64,000 bases of DNA from Paragordius varius (Eukaryota > Animalia > Nematomorpha): positions 248,001 to 312,000 of the forward strand of contig OZ176059.1 of the NCBI GenBank assembly GCA_964247055.1. Reading direction: 5' to 3'. Below the pieces are notes generated by a model that worked only from the letters and a program-made list of their open reading frames with translations, had not been told where the DNA came from and made no database searches. Below are positions 1,432-64,000 of the stretch, one piece after another. Position numbers and translations under genes: made by a program. Every line of letters begins with the position of its first letter. Position 1 is the first letter of the stretch.

Positions 1432-4400
1432 CGTCTATTAAAACTGAGTTCAATGAGCCACAAAGCGAAACATCATAGCAATAACAAAGACGGTAATGGT
1501 GGAATAGGTGAATCCATACTTTTTCAACATCCAATTTATAGGTGGGTATATTGTTATAAATTGAAATTTTAAGACAAAACATAAAAATTAAATGATAAAT
1601 ATATTTTTATCAAAAGACAGCCATACTTTTTAAACCTTAATTTTTTTATATCTAACCTAGCATTTTGATTGGCAAAATAAAATGAAATAGATATAAATTG
1701 CTAACTTTTAAATTTTTACTCTATCTTTCTTGAGTACATTATTTTAGAGGAAAACTAATTAGTAATCTGATAAACCAACTTTACATATAAATGAACCAAA
1801 CAGGTATTTAATTAGATAGAAACATTTTACTTATATCATTAATTATGCGAAAGAAATTAATACAAAACTCCTTTAATAATATGATCGATCTTTTTAATAA
1901 TTACATATTTTTTAGGGTGTTTTACGTGTCTCACGATTCGCAAGATCTAAAAATATTCAGTTATATAGCACGAGATTGTGGAACCAATCTTTTCAAATGC
2001 AACGTATTTAAGGCGGATAAAAAGGTTTTTTACACATTAATTTTCGATGAAAAATAGTTGCTTAACAGTTTTATCTATGTTTATAGGAACAAGCCATGTA
2101 TATAGTTCGTACCATTGGGCACGCATTTGAAATTAGCCATAATATAAATGTTGACACAGGATTATTGAATAAAAATATGAAGCCCAACAAAACAAATATT
2201 GCCACAGAAAATAACAATCGTCCCAATCATGTATCAAGTAATAAAAATTGTGATAATATTAATCCTGGCAATAGCGAAAACGTCAAAATGTCGTGTAAAA
2301 ACAATACAGACCCAATAATATATCCGTTTGATAAAATTCAAAGTTCACCCACTAAATCAGATGGTAAAAAGGTTGAGGAAAATGGCAGAAATGTTAATTC
2401 TAAGCTAGTCGTGCATGAAAGTCCATTAATAAATTTGGACGATAATAATAATAACACCCATTTAGATAAAGATTTAAATAAAAAGAATTGTATTAATGAT
2501 GGCAATAATAAAGCAGGAAATCAAAATATTTCATCTCTTGATAACACAATGCCCTTAAGTAAAGACCAGACAATTATAAATCATTCGAATATTACCGCTG
2601 ACTATACGTTTGATTCAGCCATACATATGGATAAGGAAGGGGGCGATGAATGCGATATGGAATTGTGTCAGGAAAAAGCGCATATGAGAGGTTTGCAGAC
2701 TATGTAAAAATAAACCGAAAATGTTAATTATGAATAAATTTTATTTTGTTTTACACAATTTAGTAAGTTTTGCAGGTAATGTGTTAATTTTATTTAGTTT
2801 TTAATTATATTGGTATTACTCATAAAAATCTTTATAGGTACATCGATTAAAGTTCGCTTTATTTTTATATGTGGTGGCATTAGAAAAAGAGTGTCCAATA
2901 CATTTGTGTTAATTAGCCATTTAAATGATTGTGTTTACAGATAGCGGACTTTCCGGTTATTCAATAGCCACAACAATAAAATCAAGTTCACATCACAGTG
3001 TTAGTAATGGAAATCAAAATATTATGTCGCACCAAGAAGAAAGTTCCCAATTTTCGGATAAAAACAAAATAAATTCCGCCTTACTGGTAATTTTTATGAT
3101 GCATTAAATATATAAATTTATAAACAGAAAATGTATACACTTAATAACTGATATTTTTTTATAATCACAACTTGTTTTTTAATATAACGTATTGTTTTGG
3201 TTAGAGGTAAGTGATAACACTCAAAATTATATAGCATTTGCAGTTTAAAAAAGTTCTTGAACACATTTCAAATTGGTCCTCAATACTTCAATTAGTTCCT
3301 TGAACATTTAAAGTTGGTCCTTAATTTTATTTTCTTTCTATAAATACCATACATAATTCACCTATTCTAACCTATTATATTTTTTTATCCCAAACTTTTA
3401 AATTCAACTTTTATTCATATATAACCGTATATTTATTTTTTTAAAAATAATTTAATAATAATATTTTAACAAGTAATTAAAAAAAATTTAAGTTTTCTGG
3501 GTCATTTGGAATTATCGTTATTAACATCAGTAGATTATTGATAATGTTTGAAACATGGATGATGTTAATTTTGGATGAAATAATGCTGATTAATAAAGAT
3601 ATTAGGTTAAAATATAAAATAATAGAAATTATATGCAAAAATTATTGTTATACGCAAACTCCAAAAATTTAAGGAACAACTTGAATTGTTCAATGACCAA
3701 CTTGAAGTGTTCAACCAAAGTACTCAAAGACCAACTTTTAATGTTTAAGACCTGAACAAATGGTATATATGGTTCACAATGGTCATTTAAGTTATAAAGA
3801 TAATAGTCTTTTAGTTTTTACGTTTTGTCTTTGTAATTTGTAGATCCATCAACAAACAGATGATCCAATAAATAAGTCGTCGCATATTTTTTTGCATGAT
3901 ATTCAAAACTCACTGGTGTTAGATGAATTCATAGATGATGAATTTGAAAAACCATTTAATACCGCTGATATTGCCATAAATTTGGAAACAAAAAGACAAT
4001 GTACACAATCATCCACAGAGAGTGAGAGTTTAAGGCTAACTCCAACGCCCACACATAAAAATGTAATTTTAATTTTCATTAATGCTATATACAGCAGTGT
4101 ATGATGTAAAATATGTGTCAATTAAAAAAATAAACTAAATTTTAGTATATCGGGAAAAAAGTGTTAAAAAGCAATCGTTTTTGTTGTTTATCTGACCCAC
4201 TACTGTATATAATATTTTAAAAGTTTTTTTTAAATCATACTGCTTAGTTAGCACATATCTAATGCAATATTTTATGGTATTTAAGGGAAATTCAATACAA
4301 ACTACAATTGATATATCTGATTTACACGTATGGATTTCAAATTGGTTTCAGAATCATGTAGTACCGTCCCAAATTATTAATGATCATTGTTGTAAATGTT

Positions 4401-13000: not shown

Positions 13001-16000
13001 TGTATATCAAGTTATTTTAATAATTAGTAATACCTTTTCAAGTATATCGTGTTCCCTTTTAAGTTCATGGAATGATGCTAGACATTCGGCTTCCCTATAC
13101 TTTACGGCTAAAAGTTCTTGTTCCAAAGTCTCAATGATTTCTATGTTACGTTGTTTTTCATCCTCCCATGATAATTCGCACTTTATATAATGTAATATTC
13201 AGATTAAATGGAGCACCTTATACCTTTGTAATGCCCCTATTATATGGCAAATAAATGGCTCATAATTTGCATCATGACTCTTTTTGAAATAAAAAAAACA
13301 AAATAAATTTATTTAAATATTAAACGATGATATCTAATTTATATTATTCAAGAGATATTTAAGATGAAAAAAAAATATTAAGTTACAAACATATTTTGAC
13401 GGTGTTATAATCTAAACCAGACATGGCCAACACGCGTCCCGCGGGGCGCATGCGGCCTTCGAGACTTTATGTGCGGCTTGCGAATTCCATAATTTGTGAA
13501 ATTATGCTGATAAAATCTTAGCTAAATCATCATTTATTAGACAATTTTTTTAATTTGGTTTATTCAATTGGCAGAAACTATAAAAATTTATGTCTGTTTG
13601 CATATTACAGTCATATGTTTGAAATCAAATTTATTATAAATGAATGCCCATATATTTATTTCAAATGTGGCCCGCCGGTTTTTTGAGTTTAAAATGAGGC
13701 CCGCGAAGCCATTTGTGTTGGACCCTGTACCAAATTCCAGGGATATATTCAGAGAAGATAAAAAGTTTAGGATAATAATTTTGATGAGCTATCCAGTTTA
13801 TAGCCTCTTTTTTTCGTAAAATCTATTATAAAAATGGGTCGGTGTATCAGCCTATAAAGTAAATTAGTTCATGCTAATGATCATAGACCTTTCCAAATTT
13901 TTAGACTAAATTTTAAACTATAATCGTTTATAATTGAGCACATCATCCCATCCCACAAACTTATATTTATGAGTATTGATACAAAACCATGGTAATAAGC
14001 CATGTATAATAAAATAATTAAATTTAATATTCATTTTTATTTTCAAATATCTGTAGGACATTATTAACTATCAAAACTTAACATCAATTAAATTTTGTTG
14101 AAATAAATAATATTTATAATATATTCTTAAAAAAGGGTCATGATACGAATAAAGAAAAACCCCTACATTTTTTTCATACAATCGTAATCATTACGAGTTC
14201 ACTGTATATGTTAAAAACACAAATTTCCAAATTTATACTTTGGTGTATAAAATAGGAAAAAATTACCCCTTCTTTAAGTTTGAGATGACGAATTTGTTCA
14301 AGGGCAACGGCCAAATTTTGATCTTTATCATCGAGGACTTGTCGGAGGACACGGAAATCCCGTTTAACCGAATAACTTTCTTCCGCAGCAAGTGCTCTAC
14401 TCACCTGCCCTTGTACCAATCTATCAGCTAATGAAGCACTTTCCTAAAAGTCAACATATAACAATGTAAAAAAGAAATATGTTGTATATAAAAATTAAAC
14501 TAAATTTAACTAACTGTATTTTATTATATATTATCAAGGGATGTTTTTTTCACGGGTTAAAATACAGTAAAAATTGAAAGGATACAGACAAAATGTAAAT
14601 ACATAAAGAAAAAAGGTTTTTTCAAAAGACAACCATACTCTTTCAACTTTAATTTATCCTATTACAACATTTAATAGCAACCGTAAAGTATGTGATTGAT
14701 TGTGTAAATAATAATATTTAAAAAGTAATTTATTAATTAATCTGCCTTTATATAATTTTTTTGTGTGAAATTAATATGCATGATACAAATAAAACAAATA
14801 TAATTTCCATAAGTATTTGAATACATGCAATATACAAGTAACTAATGGATAAGTTATTTACATAATACAAAAGTATAGATTTTCAAATATTATCATCACT
14901 AAAATTTGTATCATACATACAAAAAATATAATTATAATTTATACATAACATCACTACCCCTTTAGGAGAACCGCACCGGCTTCCGCCGTCTCTCAGAGTA
15001 ACGACGCTCGATCGGAATTTTATTAATTTTGTCATTATTACTATTTATGTTATCATTACATTTTATCATTATTAGTGTCATTACTATTATTGTTATCAAT
15101 GTTACCATTATTATTATTTCTGTTATTGTGGATACTACTATCATTATTAATGTTTTGAATAACTGGTGTAGTTGAGTTGGCGGATGGGTCTACGTGTTTT
15201 ATCTGGTTCGCTTGTTTTCTGACCATCTTATTGTTTTCCTGATCTCATAAGCTGTAAGAAAAAAGACCAGTTGTAGCGACGACCTCGCCTGCTTGCCATC
15301 CGGGACCCTGTTCGTTTTTAATCATTAACCGTTGGTCTATTGAAATCCTACGACGCGGACGGGGTGCGTCTAAGGCTGTTGTTTTTGTGTTAATCCAGGT
15401 CAGGGGTGTTTGAAAGACTCGTTTATAGAGCAGTTGGAAGGGAGTTTCTTTCGTGCTAGCGTGGATTTAGTTACGGTGAGACTATAAGGGAGTATTGAAA
15501 GCTTCCTTCGGTGTAATATTTAATTTTTGATTTTCTTTGCGTTCATTTAAGTCAAGATGAGATCCGGAGAGCGACAGTTAATGATATAATTTTGCAGAAG
15601 ACAATTAAGGCTACTCATAATCAAGATTGGAGTGATGTTGAGTTGGCTGGGTTTACGAACCGGAAAGTAGAAATTGCGTCAATACGTATTGTTAAGTTTT
15701 AACAATCGAATCATTATTACGGAAAGTTTACAGGCAAGTGTGGTTAATTATTTGCACAGCGATGATAATAATGGGGAAACGATGAAAGCGATGGCAAGAT
15801 TTACATGTTTTTGGCCAAAGTTAGAGAATGATTTGGTAAGAATGTACAGTCAATGTAGGTCGTGCCAGGTAAACAAGCCAAATTTATGTGAAAACCCCAC
15901 TTACCAACGGGATCCGAATGCTGTCATATGGGAGCGCTTACACATTGATATAGCTGGTCCAGTTGATGGGTATTTCTGGTAGTTAATTTTGACAGCGCAT

Positions 16001-19000
16001 TAAAGTGGTCGGAAGGGTTCATGTTAAAAAGGGTTACTTCGGTAAATATATTGCACAAACTCGAGGAAATTTTTGCCAGGTTTGGGAGTGATAACGCTTC
16101 TTACTTCAATAATTTGTACTTTACATCAACCCTGACAAACTTGAAAATTAAGCACGTGAGAGTAACCCCTATCCTAAAAGTAATGGGATGGTAGAAAAGT
16201 TAGTGGGGATCCTAAAGGGCAAGTATAGAAAAATCAAAAACTATAATATTTCACCACAAGAAGCTTTCAATACCACTTTATGGTCTTACCGTACCTCAAT
16301 TCACGCTACCACGAAAGAAACCCCCTTTCAACTACTCTTTAAACAAGTATCCCAAACACACCTGACCTGGATTAACACAAAAACAACAGTCTTAGACGCA
16401 CCCCGTCCGCGTCGTGAGTTTTCAATAGACCAACGCATAATGATGAAAAACGAACAAAGTCCTGGATGGCGAGCCGGCGATGTTGTTGATAGAACGGGTC
16501 TCCTTTCGTACAGTGTGTGGGATCAGGAAAACAATAAGATGGTCAGAAAACAAGCGGACCAGTTGAAACACATAGACCCACCCGCCAACTCAACTACACC
16601 AGAAGAATAGTAATGATAGTTATAACGATGGCAATAACAGTAATAATAATGGTATCAGTATTGATAATGATAATAATAATAATAATAATAGTAATGACAA
16701 TAATAATGATAAAAATAATGAAAGTAATAATGATAATATTAAAAAAGTAAAAATTATTAAATATTAATCTGCCTTTATGAAATTTGTGTGAAATTAATTT
16801 GCATGATATCAAAAACAAGAAAAATTTTCACAGGTATATGCTTAATAATTCAAAATATACGAGTAACTAATGGATAAGTTATTTACATAATACAAAAATA
16901 TAGATTATTCAAATATTATTATCACTCAAATTTGTATTATACATAAAATATAATTATAATTTGTATACATAACAGTTACCAACATACATCTCTATTTTAT
17001 ACTTTACGGTTAAAACAATTATATATAAAAAAACAAGATTTAAAAAGTATAGTTGTCTTTTAGAAAAAAATATTTGTCATCTTTATATTTTTACGTTTTG
17101 TCCGTATGATTTGAGCGCTTATGGTAAAAACGAAAGGTTAAAAAGGCATAGCTAGATTTGAAAAATATTTGTTTTTTATATTAGGGTTGGGTTTTTTCCC
17201 CGGTTAAATTATAACGGTTTTAAATGTCATGAATGTAATAATTGATTCATGGTCATAAGCAGTCATGATTACTTATACAAATGTAAAAATTGTGTTATAA
17301 TTAAATCAAACGAAGGTAATCATATAATTAGTAGGATAGTTTTAATGATTAATGAATATGAAATTGTAAATTAGTTACATAAATTTTAAGTTTATAGATA
17401 TAAACAGTTTAGAGTTCCTTTTTTTCTATATAAGGGTCAGGACAGACTCAAATTTTATCAGGACTTGTGAAGGCTAAAACACTCACCTGCCTGTCTGCCC
17501 AGGGCTAATTGACAGTGATATCATGAAAAAATTGCATAGTTTCGGGCAACTCTCTCTGCCATTCCACGCACTCATTCTAAGAGTCCATCACGCCTTAAAA
17601 ATTTACACTTATATTACACAACATTTCATTTTGTATACATATAACTTATAAGATGATATAATGTAATGTATGGAAAACTGTGGATATAGTTTGGTTTTAT
17701 CTCGTAAAAATACCATTTTTCAGTCAAAAGCAACACCCTTTCAACCCAAACGCAACATTTTTAATTCCGTTCAAATGGACCATGTTGCGTTTATATGATT
17801 CATTATATCGTAAAAATATTTTTTTAATGCTTGAAAACCAACCTGTTCAAGGTATTGGATCCGTTGTTTGAGCAATCTATTTTCACCCTTGAGTTTTTTG
17901 GTTTCGGCTAGGCCCTCATTCTCTTTGGCCCGGATAGTAGTGTAATCTTTTTCTAGGCGTTTCATTCGTTTAGTGTCTAAGGGAACCCCTGCACCCCCAT
18001 TCCCATAAAATGCAATGTGAAACAATACATCGGGATCATTGCCGAGTCGGGCTGGAATGTCTTTTTGTAAATACTGTAAGTTCAGATAGAATTTAAATGT
18101 GAAATGAAAATAAATGGTATAGTATAGTGCGTATTATTAATGTTCAATTATAGCGTATGGGTAAAAAAGAGCAAATGGTTCAAATTAAACAATCTCCTCG
18201 CATATTTTCATATTAGATGTGTTGATTAAATTAAGAAAAAACCTTGTTTTATACCATAAGCTATGGTATGTATTACTAATTGGCCAAACAATAAAGTGGG
18301 TACTATTTGAAACTACAGTAAACATAGTTATTTTTTTACATATAAAATATGATTAAACACTAATGTTTGTAAACTATGTAAAGTTTTTACTTTACCGATT
18401 AAGCAAATTATCCTTTATTTAGCCATGCAAAAATATAGCAATATTTAATCAAATTATGGTTTTGTTGGTATTTAAATATTTTATAGGGAAAAAAAAGTGA
18501 ATTAAAAAGTATCAATACTTTTTACCATTATGTATTACAATATAAGTCAAAAAAATACGGTTGTTTACTGTAAACATATCTTTATGAAAGAAATCTAAAA
18601 AAATACTTTAAAATCAAAAACAAAAATATATTATATGTAATTATAATTAATATAAATATACCTGTATCATACCCTCCATATCTAATGCCATAAGGTCCAT
18701 TTTGCTTAAACTTAAAATAGCGGCGGCAATTTTAAAGATAACATCTAACCCCTAATCAGTACATAAATGCAAAAATTTAAAATTTGTTTCATGGGTATTA
18801 AAAAAAATATGTTAAATTATAATCAAAAAAATTTCAAGAATTCCAGATTTTTTTTAAATATACATCTAAAATAAAAACTATAACAAGGCAAAACATAAAA
18901 AACAATAGAAAAAATCATTTGCATAGAAAAAATCAATTTTCTATTTTATAAAACTCAAACTTTTACAATTGTTAGACATAAAATTAATCATGTGAACCAA

Positions 19001-49351: not shown

Positions 49352-50067
49352 TATACCATTTGCACTTCAAGAGAGTCCTTGAACACTTCAAGTTGGTCCT
49401 TGAACAGTTCAAGTTGTGAACAATTCAAGTTGGTCTTTAAACAGTTCAAGTTGGTCCTTGAACACTTCAAGTTGGTCCTTTGACTTTTTTGTTTTGTTTT
49501 TAACTTTTATCAATCAAATCGTAAATAATTTAACTATTTTATTATTTTTAACCTATTTTCTATTATTTAACATTAATTTTAAATACATATCATTTAATCT
49601 TTGAAAAACCGTATATCTTTATTAATTTCTTAAAATAATTTTGGATATTTATAAGATTTTAACCCGAAATGAAAAAATATATAGGTTTCCTGGGTTATTA
49701 AATAAAATTTTACATCAAAAACATTTAAAAGTCAATAATTTTGTTTAATTAAAAAAATAGTTTGACACAAAAAAGTTGTTTTTGTATAAAAAATTTTATT
49801 TTTAAATGAATAAATATATAATAAATAAAGAAAATTAGGTTAATAAATAATAAAATAAAAAAATAAATGCAAAAATTATGGTTAAATCAAAATTATAAAT
49901 TTTAAGGACCAACTTGAAGTGTTCAAGGACCAACTTGAAATGTTCAAGGACCATGAACTGTTCAAGGACCAACTTATATTCAAGGTTCAACTTGAATTGT
50001 TCAAGGACCAACTTAAATTGTTCAAGGACCAACTTGAAGTGTTCACTCTTGAAGTGCAAATGGTATA
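49352..50067. mobile_element. Foldback-type non-autonomous DNA transposon (family B), best copy
   Basis: Terminal inverted repeat TATACCATTTGCACTTCAAGAG ... CTCTTGAAGTGCAAATGGTATA, with inverted arrays of a 21-bp unit CA(C/G)TTCAAGTTGGTCCTTGAA at each end and an AT-rich core. Confidence 0.85.
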
Positions 50068-51065
50068 TTTGTACAATATTTTAAACCTCTTTATACCGAT
50101 TCTTTCATGCCTCAAAGCATAAAATTAGTTTAAAATTTTTAGTTATTTTTAGCAAAATTTTGGAATAGATGTTTTTAAATATCAAATTCACCTTTATACT
50201 TTCATTGCAAAATCTCCTTTTTACTATCTCAAGGAATTAGCCAAATCAAATAGATTTCACCATTATAGAAGGACGAATCTGGAGCCAACGTGTAAAAATA
50301 ATATTTTCTAAAAATATTGTTTTGCTTATATAAAAGACTCATAGGGCTGATAAAGCAGTCTTGTTTCAACCATATAGCATTTTTCATTAATTTATTTTGC
50401 AATGGCATCCCCGATTATGTATCATATAAAACAAACTATATGGTTGTAGGGAGAAGTGTAAAGCATATAGCTTTAACCGAAAAATTTTTTATATAGCAAT
50501 ATGTCGCATATTTTCCCATTTTTTGATATAACCTAGAAAGAGTAAATATTTCTAAAATCACTCATAAAACCCAAAACCAAAGGATCCTAAGAGCTTTGAT
50601 AGATATTTACCAAATTGAAAAATACCGAGAAAAACATTTGACCGTCATAATTTTTTCATTTCATTTGTATAAGCCAAAGATCATCTAAAGCTTCTAACTG
50701 ACCCAATTTCTTGGATATACTATTATCAAAACTGGTAACGCTTTATGCAAAAAACAGTTAAAAATTATTTATTATCATTTCGAAAAGGATCATTTGTTAA
50801 TTATTCTACATTTTAACTCCAATTTTTTCCAATCTAAACATTAATTCCCATATACATAAAAACAAAATCACTAAGAATGAATTTATTATTGAACTAAATT
50901 ACAAAAATGCTTTATCTAAACACTATCAATATATAAATACAATTAGCGATTATATATAAATGCGTCTGCAACACCTAAGAAAAAGGTTGAAAAACACAAT
51001 ATGAAACAAATGTTAAATATACATTTATAAAAAGAAAGTTATTGCATTTTTTCTGTTGATGGATT

Positions 51066-52346
51066 CTAACAATATCGAGGTTTGTGATGATATTCCCCAT
51101 ATTCCCCTCCAGGATATTTTGGTTTTTCAACTCCAATCACGGGGACATGAATTTCGTTGTGGAGATCTCCGTTGTCAGAATAAGGACTAAAATTATTTAA
51201 ATTTTAATATTTTATCCACAAAATGAAATTATGATGTATTGTAAATATGATATAAATATGTCACGTACTCATAGTATTGCTTAAATTCAAATTCACCAGT
51301 TGTTTTTTGACCATTGAGGCGCAAAACTTTCAAAAGTGTTTCAGCCTTTGATACTATGATGGAAGAGAAGGCTTCACCCCCGAACATATTGACATATACC
51401 AGAGGCCCTTCTATATAACTAATTTTGACCTAATACATGGATCGAATTTTAATGAAAATAAAATTTGTGACAAAAATATGAAAGAATTACTTTAGGCGAA
51501 AGGGGTTGCGGTGGATAAGTGTCATATGGAGGTCCTATAGGTAGACTCACACCGGGTACAGGTCCGCCTTTGATTAAATTGTAAAGGAAATCTTCATCAC
51601 TTGTGGATTGTAGTAGGGGCCCATTTACACCCACTGGGAAGGTCAGAGGTAACTTGATATCTAAAATATAATTGATAATGTAATTACATGTGTTACGGGT
51701 TTTTGTTTTATATAAAATATAAATTAATATCTTACATTCCTTGTTATCTCCCTTAAAGTAGGCGTAAATCGTGTCATAACCCGCTCCAAGCCCTTGACTT
51801 TTATAATCTTGTGCATCAATTATTGCTGAAACCAAGGTAATATTGACATACTGACGAACTTCATAAAATTCATTTTTGCAGACAACTTTGAAGGGTGGAC
51901 ACCAGCGTTGACCACAAAATGATGGAATATGTCTATTAGAAAATATACATTAAATTTAATATAAATAACTTTGTTAGCGATACCAAAGTTACATACCCTG
52001 GTAACCAATCATATATGGATACATCATTAAAGTTGTCAAACAAATCCTTGTACAAGGCTCCAATAAATGGTACTCTACGCACTTCATATTGATCAAAGAA
52101 ACGAAGGGAGGGGGCCACGTACCTGGGCTCACCCGGTGGAGTTGGAGGTGGGTTATATGGGGTCGCACGGACTCGTCGCGTGCTAAGTGGCTGAATGGCT
52201 TGCGTTGTTCTCCTAGTTTTAACCTTGTAACGAGGAGGTGAGTCTTCATCTTGACGCTTTTCTCGTGTAGCTTGTTCCGATATTTGAGCCATATACAACA
52301 GAGAACACAATAGTGTTAACGGAATAATGAAAGAAAAGTGTGCCAT
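51066..52346 (-). CDS. Secreted SOUL/HEBP-family heme-binding protein, copy A (5 exons, 332 aa, intact)
   Basis: Exons 52346-51997, 51932-51736, 51660-51491, 51429-51269, 51186-51066 total 999 nt with GT-AG introns of 64, 75, 61 and 82 nt. Signal peptide MAHFSFIIPLTLLCSLLYMAQISEQA. SOUL motifs in order: PSFCGQRWCPPFKVVCKNEFYEVRQY, GYDTIYAYFKGDNKEYIKLPLTFPV, SLPIGPPYDTYPPQPLSPKVKI, VYVNMFGG, YYDPYSDNGDLHNEIHV. These parallel HEBP2 YEIRHY...GFTKLNSYIQGKN...KIKMTAPV...PPRP...VFVRSFDG...YNSP...NEVWL. Confidence 0.85.
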
Positions 52347-52619
52347 TATAGTGAAAAACTATTCCTAAGTTTTATATACAATGAAATGAAATGATAGAAA
52401 TAATTTTAATCCGCTAGTAGCATGGCTTTTATACTTTTGACCGAGCTTAGAGCTTAATTTATTCAAATAAGGAAGCAATATAGTTTAAAGAGACTCAATT
52501 ATTTCTCACAACACCAACATTAAGGAAAAAATATCCAGACCACAATAATCAAACCTTAATTGTTTTTGAAGTTTTACATATGATACAAAATATATATAGA
52601 TAGTATTTCAATATATATA

Positions 52620-54010
52620 TTTATTTTCTACAACAACAATTTGTCCAGTATAAGCACCAATAAATAAAATGTGTTTGGTTTCATGATCATACAAAATGTA
52701 CATAAAAGGCGTAGCCGTGAATTCATAAGTGTTCCCTGATGTATCCGATTCTCCAATAGGTGTCGCAGCAGACGCCACAGTCCCATTTTCTTTCACTGAA
52801 AGGCTTTATTAACTAAACTTGAATCATATAAATTCTTTTTGGAATCCTTCGTAATTCCTGAAAAATCGCCACCCTAAATTATTTTATAACAGTGTCAAAA
52901 AATAAAACATATATTTGGTGGTATATTTTTTTCAAAATAAAATTAACCAAACGATACTTTTTAGTCAATGAATACCAATGATTTTATAAATGATAGTGAG
53001 TTTTAATCTAAGTGGTATTAAATTTTAAAGTTCTGTTCTCGTTTAAAACTATTATATCTTTGCCTAAAAATCTTGCGTACGCCCAAATTTTCTAGGGACT
53101 TAATCAAATTAAGATCAGATAGTGTCTGGAAAACTGGCAAAACAACATGAACATCAACAGCATTGACACTCTCTATGTACCGTTGTATCCTATCAACCGT
53201 TAAAGCCTTAATCAAAGTAGATATGGTTTTAGCGGGTGGCTAAATGACATACAAGGCAAATCTCGCAGAGAATAAGGCAATTTCAAAACTTTAAGGTTTT
53301 CATCCGTGTCCTCCATCGGTTCTTCAAAGTAGAGGAGCGTTTTTTCACCACGCATACATTTTAATAAAAGGACTTTCCCGTCATCGCGGCGAAAACTTTG
53401 CTTGGCAGATAGCTTACAATCAAATGATTGTCTCCAATGATCTTCTAAATTAATCGTACTAGTCAAACATTGGCGTATTCTTCGTAATGAATCCCGGAAC
53501 CAATTAATTCCTAATCAAGCCTTTGGTAGTACGGGCCACATCCTCATTATGGTATTTCGTGCACTAACTGGCGCAGCATGAAAATCAAGTGACTTAGCTT
53601 CACTCATATAATATAAGCTAACATTTTTAAGGTAAAATATGATGTCAGAGTAGAGGCCGGATGATATGGTAATATTACTTGAAGCTTGCAAGCTTTGCAA
53701 CATGGTTAGGAATGAACGTTGCAAAGCCAGTTGGTTATTCCCATGTTCATGATTCCTAGAAAGGCTCGGTACCAAATTGTATTGGAGTCCGTTAAATAGT
53801 TCATCAAATGTTTTACCACGCAATCCCGTCATCACCGCACTCAAACAATGGCCAATGTTAGTTGGGGAAAAAACTAGTGAAACATCCTTATACATATCCT
53901 GCAAAAGTTTGATGAAAAAGGCATGATTAGCAGACTCAAATCAATATATTTCGTGACCGTTTTACAAATGACAGGGTAAAAAAGCATAAACATTTGAAAA
54001 TAATCATATC
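52620..54010 (-). pseudogene. Serpin copy A with multiple frameshifts (pseudogene or assembly-error copy)
   Basis: Colinear with the intact serpin at 61711-63047. Lesions: a ~30-nt out-of-frame deletion in the signal peptide leading to an early TGA; 1-nt deletions near 53935, 53550 and 53270; a 4-nt deletion before the hinge (~52795); loss of the His codon in the HPF motif. The ORF track shows it split into 4 fragments (QDMYKDVSLVFSPTNIGHCLS, EDHWRQSF, PVFQTLSDLNL, ENGTVASAAT...PFMYILYDHETKHILFIG). Confidence 0.8.
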
Positions 54011-54084
54011 AACAATCAAAAAATAGTGTTGTATAAAAAATTTTAACCTTTAGCTCATTTAAACCCTTATTTTTTTATTACATT

Positions 54085-54150
54085 ATAAACTGAATTATGC
54101 AAATAACAATGGCTCGCTTACAATAAAACATGCATTAAAGAGCTATTTTA
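54085..54150 (-). promoter_or_regulatory. Conserved upstream block of serpin A with octamer motif (ATTTGCAT on minus strand, 54097-54104)
   Basis: The block gctct..aatg.atgttttattgtaagcgag...ttatttgcataa..agtttataatg is conserved with 61575-61635 while flanks diverge. Confidence 0.45.
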
Positions 54151-55079
54151 CATGGGTTTAAATCTACTATAGCTTTGCATTGTGGAATTATATTCCATTC
54201 AAATTTAAAGACTTTTTTTAGATAATTTTATGTTACTGAATATTTGATTTAATGATTTACGTAAAGTTATAATATTAAAAGTTTCCTTTTATGAACCCAA
54301 CGAAATGTATATATTTCTTTCAAAAGTTATAATTCTATGAGTTGAGCTGATCACAAGATATAATCAAAGTAGCTGTATGTATTATTCGCTAAATTATACT
54401 TATTTGTAAGATGTTAATCATCATATCATAACGGAATACATTTTTATATAAAATTTGGCCTTTGTTAAAATTAAACTTAATGGCATTGATTTCTGATGCA
54501 TATACTTAAAATGTAAATACCAAATTCAAATGATACAAATATATATCGACCCAAAATCCTGGAAGCTGATTGGGTTTTAAAGGATTACACGTAAAAGTGC
54601 ATCTTTACACAGTAATTTAAACTGGTAAACTGAAAAGTTATTAAATGGCAAAAGACATTTGTGTTATGCAAAAGGCTCATATTTAAGAGAGAGAGAGATA
54701 TATAAACCGCTAAACCATTGATTAAACAGTCAAATAATCGATTATTAAATAACCTTTTTCTATAACTTAAAAAAAGGAATTGAAAAAAATTGCTTGTTTA
54801 GAAAATTATTATCGGTTAATTCTTTTTTTGCGAAGTTTTAGGACATTTTTTTACGTTACTTAATGAAAACAGGTAAAATATAAAATGGAATTCCATGTGC
54901 CCCCCCCCCCCTTCTTCTGAGTCCGTAAATTAACCAGCGCCTATTAAACCAATCATATCATTATACACTGCTCACTTGAATATGCACGAAAAGACAAAAA
55001 TAATAAAGAAAAGTAAATCCAAACACTATTATATCTTGGAGATAATTTATAAATGAATGTTAACATATTTTGATCATGT

Positions 55080-55350
55080 CATGCGATCGAATTATTTAGA
55101 CAAGGACATATGTTTTGGAAAGGTAGAAGGGTATGAAAAAAATACAAGGTCGACCGCAGATACTGTAGTTTGATGTGATAAAAGAGGATACTAAGATGAC
55201 ATTAAAACATTTGAATGTAGCGGTAAATGATCGAAATGGAATCAATAATGCACGTTTTAGATCCAAAATGTCGCTTGTTTCGTCTTGGCAATAACCAACA
55301 ACCAAGTTTAAATTATGTTCTATTTCATCCTGATAATGTGCAAATCTAAA
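55080..55350 (+). mobile_element. Possible non-LTR retrotransposon (R4/Dong-like) C-terminal remnant
   Basis: Frame-switching peptides KKYKVDRRYCSLM / VLDPKCRLFRLGNNQQPSLNYVLFH resemble the post-RT zinc-knuckle region (VD...W...D.CRLC....ET..HI). Multiple stops. Confidence 0.25.
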
Positions 55351-55839
55351 TTAATTCTAAACATATTTTTGTTATCTTTTTACATTATTTTTTGCCGTAT
55401 GAAATATCAATTTTATTAGAAACTTATGAAATGTTAAATTTTGTTTTTTAAGAAATGCTAGCTGGTCCTGTTACGCTTTGTGACATAGTCTCACCGATAA
55501 TTATTGTTAATAATTTGCAATAAATAGAAGTAATGGAGATAAAAAATAATAAAAAACATATTTAATAAAAAGAATGTCTTTATTTATTTTTTACGGGTTT
55601 ATGCATAGGCTCAAATATTGTTTACTCGAAATTGACCATATTTAAACTGTCGCTTAGTTAATATTCAACTATCATTGGATTTATTTTAGGATTTTCGTTT
55701 CACGAAATCATGGTTAAAAATTTTATTTTGAAATTGTGTTCACACAGCTGGGATCAAGGGATATAAAAAGAAATCATTTGTGCCCCATTCTTAAAGGAAA
55801 GAATGATATACGAATTCCCTCAGAAATCTATTTAACTGT

Positions 55840-56760
55840 CGCATGGCTTCTTAAGTTTTTCACAAAACCAGGTCATTTTGTATGGTGTATCAGTTAAACC
55901 GGCAGACCTCTACCCATAGACCTATATGGAAAAAGCGAAAAGTTAAATTCTTTGCTCTTATGGGGCAAATATTTGGAATCATCTTTGATACCATCGTCTC
56001 ATGGGTTATTTGAAAAAATACCTCAACACTCAATAATCGTTACGATGACATATTTTAAGGGCATAAAAACCCCAAATTAACATCAAAAAGCCTGACCTCC
56101 AATTAAGGTAATATAAGCTTTTAAGAGCTCATATGGCTTCATAATGTTTCTGTAATTTAGCTCCAAAACAACATAATTTCTATATAGTGGCGCAGTTTCT
56201 GGCGGGTAGTTCCTAACCCAGGGGCAGGTATAAATATGAGCAAAATTTATGCCTTTATATGGGGATAGAATTATCATGGACATATTTTCCTATTAAGTCT
56301 CATAGGTTTTCTGAAATTTAGCTCCAAAGGGAGGCTGTATCCATATGGTGACGCAGTTTTCCGCGGGTAGCCCCCTACCCGGAGGCCTTAAAATAGACGT
56401 TGGATAAAAAATTTTGCCCTTTTACGGAGATACCTGGAATCATAATTGATTCCATATGCTCTCATTAGTTTTTGAAATAATTGCTTCAAATTCTATGGTG
56501 GCGCATTTTTTAGGGCGCGAATGGCCCAATTAACGGCTAATTTTGGAAAACTACACGATTTAAATTTATGCCTTTACGGATAATATTTTAAGCACCTATA
56601 GATCTCATATGGCCTGATCGGTTTTCTGAAATTCATCCCCAAAAGCACGCTATTTCCAGACGCGACAGTTTTTAGCGGGTATCTCCTTACCCAGCAGCCA
56701 ATATAAAAAAACGTACGACTAAAATTCTTGCCTTTCAACAGGAAATACTTGAAATCCTTT
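55840..56760. repeat. Diverged tandem array, unit ~150-166 bp, ~6 copies
   Basis: The anchor aaatt(t/c)(a/t)tgcc(c/t)tt recurs at 56243, 56409, 56562 and 56722 (and ~55945). gcagttt..gcgggta recurs at 56192, 56353 and 56666. gttt(t)ctg(a/t)aatt recurs at 56146, 56306 and 56621. Confidence 0.75.
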
Positions 56761-57849
56761 TGATTTTTACGGTGTTATACCTTGGGCGAAAAAAATTCAA
56801 TTTTTTTGCGGACTTAGTTTTTTTTGAAAAAAATAGCATTTTAGGGGGGGGGGGGGAGCGGGTTAAAACAGGGCCTAAGTTAAAAAAGAAGCTGACTATG
56901 TGCGGCGCAATCAAAAAGTATAAAAATCATAATTGAAATCGAATGGTCCAACACGCTTTCCGGAAAATTGTTTTAAAGACAGGATTTTTGTGGACATGTT
57001 TTCAAAAAAAACCGTTTTTTACAAGGGGTGAGTCCGAACTGGGGGCCAAATTCAAAAAAAGGGCGAAACCGGGGCATTTATTAATCATTATATTTTTTCA
57101 ACATTTGATTTGAATGATTCTACCGGTTTTTACGGAAACAGATCACAAAGCCAGCATTTTCCATTTTTATAAATATTTAGATTAGATATTATTAGGAAGT
57201 TTATTATAAAAGATGCTCAATATTATTTTTTTATCAAAAAAAATGCGGGAAGGGCATTAATGAATCAAGAGTTGTTCACTCACTTTATTTTGTTATTATA
57301 TTTTGTCCGTATAATTCCAATGTTTACTGTATATTTTGACGGCTGTGGTATGAATGAATTGTTCATTATTTAGACCATAACAAAACCCTAATTGTTTAGA
57401 TACATTTCGATGTGTGATTAATTCAATTCGCTTTTAAGAAAGACCTTAGAATCTATATCGACTTCGAATTACATCTTGTGTCCTGTTGTAATATAATTTA
57501 GCATTTAAAATTGAAAAACAAATTATATACAATATGTTATATAATCATCACGAATCTCCATAAAGGCCATTGCCCAAATTTAAAAAATGGTCCGTCCGTT
57601 GCCAAAATTAAAATAATTTCTCAGCCGCTGACTGACTCATTTTTCATTTTATCAATCTGAGAGCATCGGTATCAGCTAATCAGTAATAAGATTTGCAAAG
57701 TCATTTTTTGTTTAGAGTAAAATGGTTTCCTTTTGTTTGGTTCAGTAGATTTTTTGGTAATAATATTATTTATGGCTATGAATTGACTGCATTCATATGC
57801 GGTAAGTCTTTTATGCCTGTCATAAAGTCTAACCCTATTAGTTTTTTAC

Positions 57850-58150
57850 CAAGGAACTTCCACTGTGAATTTTTTTAGCTATATAATGGTACACTTAAGT
57901 CGTTTTCTCGGCTAATCCATTTGACTTTGGTAAATTACAATAAATTTGTTTTTTCAGTAAATTATTAAAATAAATGATGTGAAATCTGTTTGCGTTAGGA
58001 AACTCAATCGATATATATATATCCAGATTTTCCCAATGAAAATATATGAAATAACTTTTAAATATTAAGCCGTTATCAATCAACCGGCTATGTCTATTAA
58101 AAAAGATAGCTTTAAAGTTCCAATTCTATAATTGTTCTCTTTTATATTGA
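57850..58150 (-). mobile_element. Gypsy integrase remnant
   Basis: Minus-strand fragments IDIAG, IDNGLIFKSYF and PKSNGLAEK in the correct order; heavily decayed. Confidence 0.4.
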
Positions 58151-58430
58151 GTTACAGAATCAATGCTGCCTCAATTCGTTTTAAATTTATGTATATTGTT
58201 GGCCAAACTACAGATTATCCTGCAGGAATCGGAAGCTATTTAACTGTAATATCAAGTTTAATCGTCAAAACAATATTCCTTTAGAGAATTATTCATACCC
58301 CATTTATAAATTTTAAATAAATATATTTAAATTAAATAGTCATGATTTGACATTGATCGTATTTGATAATACCAAACTGTTTTACTTATTTATCTATAAT
58401 GTTAATATTAGGTAGACCCAACCAATGAGA

Positions 58431-58704
58431 TACAATAAAGATTCAAATTATACTAACAAAACTTATAAATATAAGACAAAAATTTATTTCTAAAGACAAT
58501 CATATTTTTTTTAAACCTTAATTTACCCTATTAAAATCCTTTAATAACAATAGTAAAATATGTAATTTGAGTTAATTGTATACTTTGATGTTTAAAAACA
58601 ATGAGATATTTGAAAAACAGAATTTAAAAAGTATGGTTGTCTTTTAGAAAAAATATTTGTTTATATATTTTGGGTTTGTCCGTATAATTTCAATTTTTAC
58701 TGTA
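58431..58704. mobile_element. MITE family A copy
   Basis: Degenerate left TIR; right TIR gtccgtataatttcaatttttactgta. Confidence 0.8.
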
Positions 58705-59541
58705 TATTCCCAAAATATACCAACTAATACAAAGTGTATTTATAAATATATGAAAATTCACAAGTTACGGTATAATTTTAAAATATAATTTATCATGAAT
58801 AAATGATAATAATTATAAAATTGTAATGTGAACATCCAAACTTTAATAATTTGTCCTGCTTCGTTGTAAGTTCGTCGAAACCTTATTGTAAGTTTATAAA
58901 ACGGTCGCATATAATCAGCATAATTATAATAATGGTCATAATTATAAAAAAAATTGGACTCCACAATTTTCGGAAAAAAGTCAAATTTATATGTAGAGGT
59001 GGATACCAAGGTCGAAATTTACGAAACGCGTAATAATTTTTACTTTAATCAAACAAATACAACCATTACGAGTTTACATGCTATAGAAGTTTTCGGAGAA
59101 ATTGGTTTTTAAAATTCTTTGAAGATATGGCTTTTAGGAAAATGGTACAGACATAAGCTTAGGCTAAACGGGGTAATTAATGAAGGTGGTTTTTTTATGT
59201 TTGGCGCATTTATATAAAATTTAATGAATGGGCTCACACATCTTTTACAAGGCCTAAAAACACGATTTTGTGAACTTGAATTCTTTGAAAACCAGATTAT
59301 ACGCGGGGTAAAGCGAGAAACGATTATATTAAAAAGATGGACCGATTAAGCTCGGGTCATGAATAATTAAATGTATATATTTGAATGAGGTCCCAAGATT
59401 TGCGGGAAATTGCTTTAATAGATTTTAGTTAGTCGCATGCTAATCCTTTTGTTAAAAATGTGTTAATTAAAAAAACATACTATTTTCAGCCTTATCCCTA
59501 ATAATAATTTTATTAACCACATAATCACTTAGCATCTAAAG

Positions 59542-59814
59542 CAGGAGTGTCTAAAACAATTGGCTTCGCGGGGCATATCTGAAAAATATATGGGTATTAA
59601 CAAAAATTTTATTAGAATTTAGATCTAAGACTATAAAACATCTATTTCTTTTAATTAAATTTTTGCCAGTTCTATGCCGAAATTCGGGAATATCGTAAAA
59701 TTAGTTTAAATAAATAATTTCTTATTAGTCAAATTTTGTATTTGAAATTTCTCGTGGGCGGCACAATTCTGTAGTGTCGCATGCGGATCGGGTGCCGCGT
59801 GTTGGACACCTATG
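59542..59814. mobile_element. hAT-type MITE (family C)
   Basis: TIR CAGG(G/A)GTGTC(C/T)AA ... TTGGACACC(C/T)(C/A)TG with a near-matching 8-bp flank (atctaaag/atttaagg) and subterminal gcggcc/ggccgc motifs. Other copies at ~7688-7908, 10416-10714, 13418-13727, 23522-23707, ~28017-28080 (partial), ~42650-42940 and ~44765-44940. Confidence 0.75.
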
Positions 59815-60264
59815 ATTTAAGGCAATTAAATATTCTTAATTTAATTATTTTCTTATCATTTTAAATTTTTATACCCTTTAACTAAAACATAAATCTATTG
59901 TATGTGTTCTCCATGGATCATATAATTCCTCCCTTTTTAGTGAAAAACTAAAATTTTATCTAAATATAATAAGATTATTATGTGATAATTCAATTTTCTT
60001 GCAGAATCTAACATAAATATGACATAGTAAATGAGGATGTCAAACATCTCAATTATAATTTTTGTCAATCGCATTATGTTTTAATATATTCGGTGATTAA
60101 TTAAAATCGCGGCTAAAAATATACAGCGCACCCCCAATATGGTCTCCCGATTTCATAATGAATATTAATAATCAGCGCCTATACAATCACATTAATATAA
60201 GGGCCTACTTTTTACATTATGATAATGAGAAAAGCCAAATAAATTTTGGGCATACGTGTTATCA

Positions 60265-60470
60265 ATGGAAAAATTAAAATTATACGGACAAAATAAAAAA
60301 AGACAATTTTTTTTAATTGATTGCGTTACCAATATATATCTCTAATTTATATTCCATTTTAAAAGTTATATTATAAAAATCAACATATAAAAACTATAAT
60401 TTTCTTTTAGGAGAAAATATTTGTCTTTATATTTTTACGTTTTGCCCGTATAATTTCAATTTTTACTGTA
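60265..60470. mobile_element. MITE family A copy (internally deleted)
   Basis: aaattatacggacaaaa ... gcccgtataatttcaatttttactgta. Confidence 0.75.
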
Positions 60471-60893
60471 TCTTTTTGATTCTCATAGAATGGATATTCT
60501 ATATTGAATTCTTTTTCTCCATTAATTTAAGAATTTATATTCAAAAGATAAAATATTGCAAATCCCAACTAAATCTTACTATCTAAAGTATGAAACATGT
60601 TTTGACTGTTTTATCAATTACGGGCCGCATCTCGATTATAAAATACGACAAAGGACCGCATACCAAAAATATAAAAAACCACTGGAATCAATGCGACCAA
60701 ATGAAGCTGTATTGTTACATATAAAAAGATTAATTGGTTAAATTTATGACAAAAATGATAAATTATTGTTAATAATTATAATTATAAAAGATATTTCTTT
60801 CAACTAGGTCGAAAAATGCAAGCTATACACTTTTGTTTATTTTTTGTATTTTTTGGGAAGTGGGCAACAAAAAAATCCTAGATCACATGAGGT

Positions 60894-61072
60894 CAGAGTC
60901 GTAGCTAGATGGGGAATGTGTTAAAATTTCTTAATTTTATTTTAAAAAAAGGGTATTTAAAAGTTATTATTTTGAAAATACATTGGACATGATCACGGTT
61001 TGATTTTTTTATTTTTTTAAATGCAAGGGTTCGCATGGATGGAGGGAGCCAGAAATGCAAGCTACGCCTCTG
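60894..61072. mobile_element. Small MITE with TIR CAGAG(T/G)CGTAGCT
   Basis: cagagtcgtagctag ... aagctacgcctctg. Confidence 0.6.
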
Positions 61073-61574
61073 CGATAGTACAAGCGTTTTGTCATTCATA
61101 ATCTTTACAGTGTACACAAATACACCACTTAGATTAATTATTTAAAAGTCATAGCAATAATGGTTCAATTCACAATTTTATAGAAGCGAAATCTTATAGC
61201 CCAAGATTAACTCAATATTAAACATTTTGGGGATATCTATATTTATACAATTTTAATCATTCAAAAATATGGTTTTAGATTTAGCAGTTTTTAACAATAA
61301 ATATGAATTTAAAGTTTTTCTACAAAAATATCCATCATTTTCATGATTTAACTTTACATACTTTTCACAACTACTTTGAATATACCCTTTGAATTGGGTA
61401 ACTCATTAAAATAAACTTTATACATAAAAAGGTTGATTTCATAAAAATACAAAAACTATAATCTTGAATGTTATACATACCCCTAAATAATTAAATAGCA
61501 ATATTCAGGTAAATAAATTTTTAAAACATATATTTAAAATTTGAATAACCATGATTGTACAATGTAACCTACTG

Positions 61575-61665
61575 GCTCTTAAATGTATGTTTTATTGTAA
61601 GCGAGGCGTTATTTGCATAAGTGAGTTTATAATGAATAAAAAGGAGATATTTAGGGTATAAAAGT
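61575..61665 (+). promoter_or_regulatory. Serpin B upstream block: octamer ATTTGCAT (61611-61618) and TATA-like gggtataaaag (~61654)
   Basis: Conserved with the left arm; lies 50-135 nt upstream of the ATG. Confidence 0.45.
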
Positions 61666-61710
61666 GTGATATTTGGGATAGAATAAAATATTTGTAATAA
61701 TTTTTTAAAT

Positions 61711-63047
61711 ATGATTTTTTTCAAATCCTTATGCTTATTTGCTATCGCGGCTTTGTTCTGTGTAAGCGATTACCCTGTCATTTGTAAAACGGTCACGAAT
61801 TCAATTGATTTGAGTCTGGCTAATCATGCCTTTTCCATCAAACTTTTGCAGGATATGTATAAGGATGTTTCGTTAGTTTTTTCACCCACCAACATTGGCC
61901 ATTGTTTGAGTGCGCTGATGACGGGATTGCGTGGAGATACATTTGATGAACTATTTACTGGGCTTCAGTACCATTTGGTTCCTAAACTTGCCAAGGTTAA
62001 ATCTCTAAATGGAATTAACCAGGTGGCTTTGCAACGTTCATTCCTAACCATGTTGCAAAGCTTGCAAGCTTCAGGAAACGTTAGTATATCATCTGGCCTC
62101 TATTCTGACAACACATTTTACCTTACAGATAAATTTGTTAAGGCTGTTAGCTCATATTATATGAGTGAAGCTAAATCGCTTGATTTTCATGCTGCGCCCG
62201 ATAATGCACGAAATAGCATTAATGAGGATGTGGCCCGTGCTACTAAAGGCTTGATTGAGGACCTATTGGCCCCAGGATCTATTACCGAGGATACGAAAAT
62301 GGTGTTGACTAGTACGATTCAGTTTGAAGATCATTGGAGGCAATCTTTTAATGATAAACTTTCGGCTGATCGAGACTTTTTGCGCGATGACGGGGAAACA
62401 GTTTCGCTAAAGATGATGCATGGTAGACAAAAACGTCCCTACTTTGAAGAACCGATGGAAGGCAAGGAAAGCGAAAACCTTAAAGTTTTGAAATTGCCTT
62501 ACCTATCTGCGAGATTTGCCTTGTATGTCATTATGCCACCTGCTCAAACCATGTCTACTTTGATTAAGACTCTAACGGTTGATAAGCTAAAACGGTATAT
62601 TAAGAGCGTGGATGCGGTTGACATTGAAATTGCTATGCCAATATTCCAAACACTTTCTGACCTTAATTTGATTGAGGCATTGGAGAATATGGGAGTACAC
62701 AAGATTTTTAGGTAAACATTGTTTATTTATTTTATAACTTTTTAACACAGGAAAAGAACTTAAAAATATTATGTATTTTTACTATTATATAATAATTTAG
62801 GGCGGATGGCGATTTTACAGGAATAACCAAGGACCCTAGATCGGATTTGCATGTTTCAACTTTGGTTCATAAAGCCTTTCTTAAAGTGCATGAAAATGGG
62901 ACTGTGGCGGCTGCTGCGACAGCTGCTGGAGCATCGGTTACATCAGCTACCCCTTATGAATTTATGGCTACGCATCCTTTTATGTACATTTTGTATGATC
63001 ATGAAACCAAACACATTTTATTTATTGGCGCTTATACTGGACATTAA
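61711..63047 (+). CDS. Secreted inhibitory-type serpin, copy B (2 exons, 415 aa, intact)
   Basis: Exons 61711-62711 and 62801-63047 with a phase-2 GT-AG intron of 89 nt. Signal peptide MIFFKSLCLFAIAALFCVSDYPVIC. Serpin motifs: NHAFSIKLLQ, VFSPTNI, INEDVARATKGLIEDLL, FEDHW, LKLPY, MP, VHKAFLKVHENGTVAAAAT (hinge), FMATHPFMYILYD...ILFIG. Confidence 0.95.
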
Positions 63048-63254
63048 ATTGTTGTATAAAAAATAAAATAAATTGAATTAGTACATATATAATTTTTATT
63101 GTTAACGAATGTTGGTGTTTGCTCGCCTATCGTAATTATCACAAAACTTACCAAAACAATTAAGTAGGTGTTGCCTGTGGTCTGTATATCAACTATTTGC
63201 AAATGTTGTCTATTGTAAGATTAAAATATTTGAATAAATTAACATCTGAGCTCT

Positions 63255-63300
63255 GTCGGAAAGTATAAAAACCACGCTACAAACGGACTAAAATTATTTC
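63255..63300 (+). promoter_or_regulatory. TATA-box promoter block of SOUL copy B
   Basis: aaagtataaaa.cca.gctac...cgga.taaaattatttc is conserved in both arms (left copy ~52395-52440, minus strand), about 70 nt before the ATG. Confidence 0.45.
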
Positions 63301-63333
63301 CATCTTTTGATTTTCAAAATTCGTTCTTTTATA

Positions 63334-64000
63334 ATGTCACACTTTTCCTTTATTATTCCGTTAACACTATTGTGTTCCCTGTTGTATATGGCTCAAATAT
63401 CGGAGCAAGCTACACGGGAAAAACGTCAAGATGAAGACTCACCTCCTCGTTACAAGGTTAAAACTAGGAGAACAACGCAAGCCATTCAACCGATTAGCAC
63501 CCGACGAGTCCGTGCCACGCCATATAACCCACCTCCAACTCCACCGGGCGAACCCAGGTATGTGGCCCCCTCCCTTCGTTTCTTTGATCAATATGAGGTG
63601 CGAAGAGTACCATTTGTTGGAGCCTTGTACAAGGATTTGTTTGACAACTTTAACGATGTATCCATATATGATTGGTTACCAGGGTATGTAACTTTGGTTT
63701 CGCTAACAAAGTTATCTATATAAAATTTAATGTACATTTTGTAATAGACATATTCCATCATTTTGTGGTCAACGCTGGTGTCCACCCTTCAAAGTTGTCT
63801 GCAAAAATGAATTTTATGAGGTACGTCAGTATGTCAACATTACTTTGGTTTCAGCAATAATTGACGCACAAGATTATAAAAGTCAAGGGCTTGGAGCGGG
63901 TTATGATACGATATACGCCTACTTTAAGGGAGACAACAAGGAATGTAAGTGAAAATTAATTATTCACAAAAGCAAAATTTGTAATATATGTATTTACATT
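63334..64000 (+). CDS. Secreted SOUL/HEBP-family protein, copy B (3'-partial)
   Basis: Exon 1 63334-63683 and exon 2 63748-63944; intron 2 runs off the window end. Only 3 amino-acid differences from copy A over the 182 codons visible. Confidence 0.85.

Follow-up and report, generated by a model that had tools for sequence, protein, structure and literature searches.

Two genes that stand side by side at two places in one genome may form a functional unit that selection holds together, or they may be neighbours that were copied once. This question is raised by a 64,000-nucleotide stretch of the genome of the horsehair worm Paragordius varius (contig OZ176059.1, here C10:248001-312000), referred to below as the window, in which a serpin gene followed by a gene with a SOUL domain occurs in two copies. 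A previous interpretation of the window (the sequence-only reading) had proposed that the two genes constitute a co-regulated module for protease control and heme scavenging. Our analysis, which extended to the whole assembly (110.6 Mb in 44 contigs, with both copies on one contig of 3.7 Mb), leads to a different answer: the locus is probably an old local inverted segmental duplication of two neighbouring, independently transcribed genes, and not a conserved functional unit. In a literature search we found no paper on nematomorph serpins or on serpin-SOUL linkage.

Two inverted arms carry the same pair of genes

Comparison of the left and right sides of the locus by BLASTN and MAFFT revealed two collinear arms of about 3.5 kb, arranged head to head, such that the 5′ ends of the serpin genes face the spacer. 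The left arm (positions 50577-54143, minus strand) consists of a serpin pseudogene and then a SOUL gene, transcribed leftward. The right arm (61575-65067, plus strand) consists of a serpin gene and then a SOUL gene, and only its portion 61575-64000 lies in the window; mapping of the arm ends beyond the window, a check that the sequence-only reading had called for, places its end 1,067 bp further on, at window-equivalent position 65067 (position 4067 of the locus L001, from which the sequence past the window end was read). Four BLASTN blocks connect the arms, namely 50577-52469 with 65067-63227 (86% identity, E = 0), 52583-52893 with 63099-62781 (82%), 53059-53979 with 62716-61770 (82%, E = 0) and 54072-54143 with 61642-61575. 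Collinearity runs from the promoters to the 3′ flank, with the introns and the intergenic stretch included, and so confirms the earlier description of an inverted serpin-SOUL duplication that faces outward, with its left arm on the minus strand and its right arm on the plus strand.

The gene order is the same in each arm: a two-exon serpin and, 283 bp after the serpin stop codon, a five-exon SOUL-domain gene. (In the right arm the last base of the serpin stop codon is 63050 and the SOUL ATG lies at 63334, close to the gap of about 290 bp originally estimated.) The genes have GT-AG introns, and GC content is 22-37%. The right serpin gene (61711-63050, plus strand), as delineated from the sequence and by Pfam matches, is intact, with 416 codons plus the stop codon; its exon 1 (61711-62711) and exon 2 (62801-63050) are separated by a GT-AG intron (62712-62800), and an AATAAA is found 12 nt past the stop codon. 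The left serpin (52620-54007, minus strand) is a pseudogene, in which we identified at least 10 lesions by walking codon by codon through the arm alignment and from the promoter alignment and Pfam fragments. One deletion removes 31 bp of the signal peptide, and six others, of 1, 1, 2, 1, 4 and 4 bp, shift the reading frame. Two stop codons are in frame (at sites aligned to the right-arm codons ending at 62265 and 62535), the splice donor reads GC instead of GT, and both the original stop codon and the TATA box have been lost.

Both SOUL genes are intact. The left gene (51066-52346, minus strand), read from the sequence, has 332 codons plus the stop codon in exons 52346-51997, 51932-51736, 51660-51491, 51429-51269 and 51186-51066. 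The right gene (63334-64000 in the window, plus strand) has 333 codons plus the stop codon; it has the exon structure of the left copy with one extra Ser codon in exon 5. Its exons 1 (63334-63683) and 2 (63748-63944) lie in the window, and exons 3-5 were read at window-equivalent positions 64017-64186, 64247-64407 and 64478-64601 (L001:3017-3186, 3247-3407 and 3478-3601), with the stop codon at 64601, 601 bp past the window end. All 8 introns of the two copies are GT-AG. The sequence-only reading had thus correctly described an intact SOUL gene and a broken serpin on the left and an intact serpin on the right, and the right SOUL gene proves intact beyond the part that was visible to it.

The family assignments are likewise upheld. 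The right serpin matches Pfam PF00079 (curated cut-off 27 bits) with exon 1 at 4.6e-56 (191 bits, profile positions 2-289 of 370) and with exon 2 at 1.6e-16 (61 bits, positions 305-367 of 370), and the same profile matches four fragments in the left arm at 1e-8 to 5e-5. SOUL exon 2 matches PF04832 at 3.8e-7 (30.7 bits against a cut-off of 27, profile positions 3-56 of 173).

The adjacency occurs only in the two arms

Whole-genome Pfam scans, the hits of which we clustered into loci by hand, found about 17 SOUL loci and about 43 serpin loci. Serpin and SOUL genes are adjacent only in the two arms; elsewhere, no SOUL-serpin pair is closer than 172 kb. A genome-wide count of linked units, also proposed with the module, therefore returned these two arms and nothing else: when recurrence at independent loci of this genome is taken as the mark of a two-gene cassette, the pair fails to recur, as the adjacency is confined to the arms of one duplication.

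The closest relatives of each gene show the same separation. The SOUL subfamily has four members, in the two arms, at C1:10.435 Mb (L003) and at C10:102 kb (L004), of which the last also encodes a signal peptide and an RKRR site. The serpin subfamily similarly has four members, in the two arms, at C10:495 kb (L005) and at C10:2.248 Mb (L006). All four unlinked copies have the exon structure of the arm copies, and none has a partner gene within the 10-kb loci that we examined. Homology of L006 to the right arm runs from the serpin promoter to 27 bp past the serpin stop codon, limits which suggest that serpins were dispersed as single-gene units. The arm copies are each other's closest relatives, both for the serpin (82.5% identity, compared with at most 77.6% to the others) and for SOUL (92-96%, compared with at most 74%). 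Since the arm copies are mutually closest and the paralogues are unlinked, the adjacency appears to have arisen once and to have been copied once.

The two genes have separate promoter motifs

Alignment of the upstream regions revealed distinct motifs for the two genes. The serpin promoter (61611-61663, plus strand) has an octamer-like motif, ATTTGCAT, at 61611-61618 and a TATA box at 61657-61663, 54 nt before the ATG. The octamer-like motif lies inside a block of about 30 nt common to the upstream regions of the right serpin, the left pseudogene and L006; the TATA box is present in the right copy, and is lacking in the left pseudogene and in L006. The 283-bp intergenic stretch (63051-63333, plus strand), defined by the arm and promoter alignments, contains a SOUL TATA box at 63264-63270, 70 nt before the ATG. 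This motif, AAAGTATA(A/T)AA, occurs 70-90 nt before the ATG in both arms and in the unlinked L004. We saw no block common to the serpin and SOUL promoters by eye (the two promoters were not aligned together).

Furthermore, the leader of the right SOUL gene has no AG dinucleotide from the TATA box to the ATG, which makes a trans-spliced downstream cistron less likely. Transcription of the two genes as an operon is accordingly disfavoured, both by the conserved TATA box that SOUL has of its own and by this AG-free stretch in the right copy. Promoter motifs and leader together indicate two transcription units, as far as motifs can predict them, although the serpin and SOUL genes may be co-expressed via shared enhancers.

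Divergence and selection between the arms

We took SOUL introns 2-4, the intergenic stretch and the serpin intron as a presumed neutral pool, which is 68% identical between the arms. SOUL introns 2-4 range from 53 to 76%, while SOUL exons are 92-96% identical and SOUL intron 1 is 92% identical. Over SOUL exons 1-4 summed, the proportions of synonymous and nonsynonymous differences (pS and pN) are 0.21 and 0.012, corresponding to synonymous and nonsynonymous divergences (dS and dN) of 0.25 and 0.012 and a dN/dS of 0.05. The low identity of the neutral pool, the SOUL dS of 0.25 and the collinearity of the arms argue that the duplication is old and real. On these substitution rates, both SOUL copies are evidently under strong purifying selection. 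The serpin exons are 82-85% identical between the arms, about as would be expected if the left copy had turned neutral soon after the duplication. Compared with its paralogues L005 and L006, the right serpin has a dN/dS of 0.09 and 0.24, respectively.

Two non-coding parts of the SOUL gene region stand out in the arm alignment. One is the 3′ flank of about 450 nt (50600-51065 on the minus strand in the left arm; L001:3602-4055 in the right), which is 90% identical between the arms, compared with 79% for synonymous sites and 68% for the neutral pool (Fisher P = 1.4e-4 against synonymous sites and 1.6e-17 against the neutral pool). The other is intron 1, the conservation of which also exceeds that of synonymous sites (P = 0.015). 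An own-genome search found the 3′ flank sequence in the two arms only. This flank could be a constrained 3′ untranslated region. As a structured RNA it was rejected, having no Rfam match and a fold z-score of 0.56.

Predicted SOUL proteins and the question of heme

In the SOUL proteins, exon 1 accounts for a signal-peptide-like N-terminus, a dibasic R-E-K-R site and an extension rich in Pro. Exons 2-5 supply the SOUL domain, and the proteins also have a tail rich in His and Tyr. Hydrophobic N-terminal segments resembling signal peptides can be read from the sequence of both gene products, as had been noted previously. For SOUL, we infer secretion from such segments together with a conserved Cys pattern: three invariant Cys (FC...C...C) are found just before the YEVRxY start of the domain in all SOUL paralogues aligned (15 loci). 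This pattern suggests that most or all SOUL paralogues of the genome are disulfide-bonded, extracellular proteins. Secreted SOUL proteins appear in some parasite secretome papers.

Family and structure searches were run exon by exon, so exons 3 and 5 are assigned to SOUL by their collinearity with paralogues. Exons 3, 4 and 5, searched singly, had no Pfam match. A profile of exon 2, built from 15 sequences of this genome including the present one, matches human HEBP2 chains in the PDB at 4-6e-6. Exon 4 carries a YVxMFGG element, and its nearest named ESM Atlas clusters are all SOUL (0.89); of 11 paralogous exon-4 pieces, 3 had weak matches to SOUL (best E = 0.032) and none matched another family. 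Further searches returned little. A word-indexed homologue search and additional searches with exon 1 detected no relative outside the worm's own genome. The stop-free frame of exon 2, intron 2 and exon 3 found nothing either in a word-indexed search or in a PDB sequence search, the exon-4 profile found nothing meaningful in the PDB, and a metagenome scan with exon 2 gave 195 pattern matches with no relative among them. A second SOUL-like motif in exon 1, a resemblance of 17 residues, was rejected as not significant (hhalign probability 1.6%).

That stop-free frame arises since intron 2 of the left SOUL gene (51661-51735) has 75 nt, is in frame and lacks stop codons, so that exons 2 and 3 can be read as one frame of 166 amino acids. 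Intron 2 of the right copy (72 nt) contains a stop codon, and the possible read-through of the left intron is thus probably due to chance.

Whether the proteins bind heme bears on the proposed scavenging role. In the YEIRHY motif of mammalian SOUL/HEBP2, His42 is the residue proposed as axial heme ligand. The corresponding position is a Gln (YEVRQY) in both arms, and is variable among the 15 paralogues. The proteins with this Gln may nevertheless bind heme, because HEBP1 binds tetrapyrroles without an axial His. To our knowledge, the vertebrate SOUL/HEBP proteins are not firmly established as heme carriers. Furthermore, we found multi-exon genes for ALAD (C8:5733504-5745205), ferrochelatase (C6:9107714-9109853) and UROD (C1:13285489-13288482). 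Judging from these genes, the worm appears to keep heme biosynthesis, unlike nematodes, and heme auxotrophy was rejected as a reason for secreted heme binders. Taken together, the Gln at the His42 position, the heme-synthesis genes and the insecure heme-carrier role of the vertebrate proteins weaken the heme-scavenging idea.

Serpins and their predicted specificity

The right serpin has a hydrophobic, signal-peptide-like N-terminus. Its reactive-centre loop (62892-62963, plus strand) was located by alignment to paralogues and to solved inhibitory serpins. The hinge E-N-G-T-V-A-A-A-A-T is invariant in the right serpin, L005 and L006, and nearly so in the left pseudogene; it lines up with the hinge regions of inhibitory serpins of solved structure and has small residues at P15-P9. 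Based on this hinge, the right serpin is predicted to be of inhibitory type. Counting from the hinge, with an uncertainty of 1-2 residues, gives Thr-Ser as P1-P1′, so that P1 could also be Ser or Val. The P4-P4′ stretch is variable among the serpin paralogues.

The clip-domain proteases that drive arthropod melanisation cascades cut on the C-terminal side of Arg or Lys. The small neutral P1 predicted here is unlike this specificity, and a role in blocking host melanisation is thus not indicated. Human SERPINB13 has Thr-Ser at P1-P1′ and inhibits cathepsin L, which serves as a lead only and not as a test.

Among 1.84 billion representative proteins, the best single-domain serpin matches are serpins of Gordionus sp. 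m RMFG-2023, with 32-35% identity and no SOUL fusion. Serpins of this Gordionus are recorded under accessions CAK9302907-13 and CAK9303102-04. A word-indexed homologue search with serpin exon 1 found nothing. One candidate from the protein search (P0012) is a serpin from a bacterial metagenome, not from Gordionus, and is irrelevant. Recent transfer of the serpin from a host was rejected, as nothing closer than about 35% identity was found among those 1.84 billion proteins.

Weighing of the explanations

Three points weigh against a simple duplication of independent neighbours. First, genes in the same orientation, separated by 283 bp and encoding two products predicted to be secreted, are also what would be expected of a co-expressed pair. 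Second, if 17 and 43 loci were placed at random in 110.6 Mb, only some 0.03 pairs within 2 kb would be expected. By this measure the founding adjacency is mildly unexpected, but it is one event in a genome whose two families are both actively dispersing. Third, the conservation of the SOUL 3′ flank and intron 1 beyond synonymous sites is unexplained by the duplication account.

The first two points, along with the joint copying of the genes and the expansion of both families in a parasite genome, are what favours the proposal that serpin and SOUL constitute a co-regulated secreted module at the parasite-host interface, with a linkage that was kept by selection and duplicated as a unit. However, this proposal has to accommodate an adjacency without a second independent occurrence in the genome, closest paralogues of each gene that are unpartnered, and separate, dissimilar promoters. 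The Gln at the HEBP2 His42 position and the presence of heme-synthesis genes speak against its heme component, and the predicted P1 of Thr or Ser misfits the Arg/Lys-cleaving clip-domain proteases. What tells most strongly against an obligate pair is the left SOUL gene, which, by sequence comparison, has been maintained at a dN/dS of 0.05 beside a dead serpin. Thus, a single adjacency event, separate TATA promoters and a serpin that decayed while SOUL was conserved leave the module for protease control and heme scavenging without support, and we regard it as unlikely.

A more far-reaching form of the same idea would make serpin and SOUL a secreted duo maintained by selection, with synteny conserved across Nematomorpha and co-expression in the parasitic stage, for which we see only a slim chance. 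If it were true, the SOUL subfamily, with its pro-peptide-like Pro-rich extension, dibasic site and His/Tyr tail, would act on host haemolymph beside the inhibitor. Synteny in other horsehair worms or stage-specific co-expression would then point to a protease inhibitor and a tetrapyrrole binder acting as a pair in the arthropod host.

A further possibility is that the locus is a functional palindrome, in which gene conversion between the arms, and not purifying selection alone, lies behind the patches of 90-96% identity. Exons 1 and 2 and the intron between them form a contiguous tract of 620 nt with 95% identity, and intron 1 (92%) and the 3′ flank (90%) contrast with the 68% of other non-coding DNA, as conversion would predict. 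However, conversion would homogenise all sites equally, whereas synonymous sites in the same tract differ by 20-21%, compared with 8% for intron 1 and 10% for the 3′ flank. Introns 2-4, which lie between conserved exons, retain their low identity (53-76%), and the serpin halves of the arms are not homogenised. The conservation of intron 1 and the 3′ flank, as it can be read from this alignment, therefore favours constraint on non-coding sequence over gene conversion, which we consider very improbable as an explanation of the locus. Finally, an assembly artefact, in which one arm is a collapsed or misjoined haplotype, had been named at the outset as a possible refutation, but there is next to no likelihood of this, since haplotigs would be near-identical, whereas the arms show 32% divergence in the presumed neutral pool, with many indels and at least 10 lesions in one serpin, and are inverted on one contig around a unique spacer with its own transposon insertions.

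We therefore return to local duplication as the probable explanation. In the order of events that we infer for this very AT-rich animal genome, in which both families are expanded, the adjacency of the two genes would have arisen as a single historical accident of gene-family dispersal. A head-to-head duplication of about 3.5 kb would then have copied the secreted inhibitory-type serpin and the secreted SOUL gene together, once. After the duplication, purifying selection would have kept both SOUL copies, one serpin copy, being redundant, would have decayed, and transposable-element sequence would have entered the spacer.

The locus thus represents a well-documented local duplication, the copies of which were differentially retained, from a phylum with barely studied genomes. 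It supplies gene models for lineage-specific subfamilies of secreted SOUL proteins and inhibitory-type serpins, which are candidates for the parasite secretome. A new functional linkage is not established.

Spacer and flanking sequences

The spacer between the arms (54144-61574, analysed by BLASTN, open reading frame listing and own-genome DNA search) is 7,431 bp long, and its open reading frames do not exceed 83 amino acids. It had been described as a repeat-rich spacer of about 7.4 kb. The length is correct, and the repeat content partly so: a dispersed repeat, non-coding and about 1.75 kb in length, occupies 55443-57183, and two shorter pieces (58427-58708 and 60345-60553) are also repeated, but the remainder is unique in the own-genome search. 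The 1.75-kb repeat has at least 113 matches elsewhere in the genome at 72-83% identity (a first look gave 5,500 candidates) and includes an internally repeated part at spacer positions of about 2156-2620. The two shorter pieces also adjoin copies of this repeat elsewhere, so they may be repeat ends.

Just outside both arms, a 21-nt unit (AAGGACCAACTTGAAGTGTTC or the reverse complement of this) is repeated in tandem, forming arrays at 49363-49480 and 49904-50045 on the left and at L001:5061-6512 on the right. The two arrays in the left flank have opposite orientations. Elsewhere in the window (15674-16610), two open reading frames resemble a retroelement integrase by eye, with zinc-binding and catalytic-core-like parts, and are probably the remains of a decayed long terminal repeat retrotransposon.

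Comparison with known systems

The P. varius SOUL proteins share with the SOUL/HEBP family (PF04832; HEBP2, PDB 3R8J/4AYZ; HEBP1/p22HBP) the exon 2 core YE(V/I)RxY...Y(I/F)xGxN and the exon 4 element YVxxFGG, and the order of their exons follows that of paralogues whose match to the family profile extends to position 161. They differ in having a signal-peptide-like N-terminus, whereas vertebrate HEBPs are cytosolic, and in the three invariant Cys before the domain, the His/Tyr-rich tail and the Gln at the HEBP2 His42 position. The Pro-rich N-terminal extension of about 115 residues with its R-E-K-R site sets them further apart, and occurred in this genome only in the searches made.

When compared with inhibitory serpins (SERPINB1/leukocyte elastase inhibitor, tick Iripins and the tandem clusters of Gordionus), the right serpin covers the Pfam profile nearly in full with two exons. 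It resembles them in its Ala-rich hinge of the loop-insertion type and in a reactive loop that is hypervariable among paralogues and, like inhibitory serpins of parasites, it belongs to a family with predicted secretion that is expanded in a parasite genome. However, its reactive loop is 1-4 residues shorter than those of most solved serpins, and its predicted P1 is Thr, possibly Ser or Val, rather than Arg or Lys.

As a whole, the locus resembles local inverted segmental (palindrome-like) duplications, with head-to-head arms, a unique spacer, and one duplicate pseudogenised while the other genes were kept. It differs from sex-chromosome palindromes maintained by gene conversion in that its arms are old and have not been homogenised.

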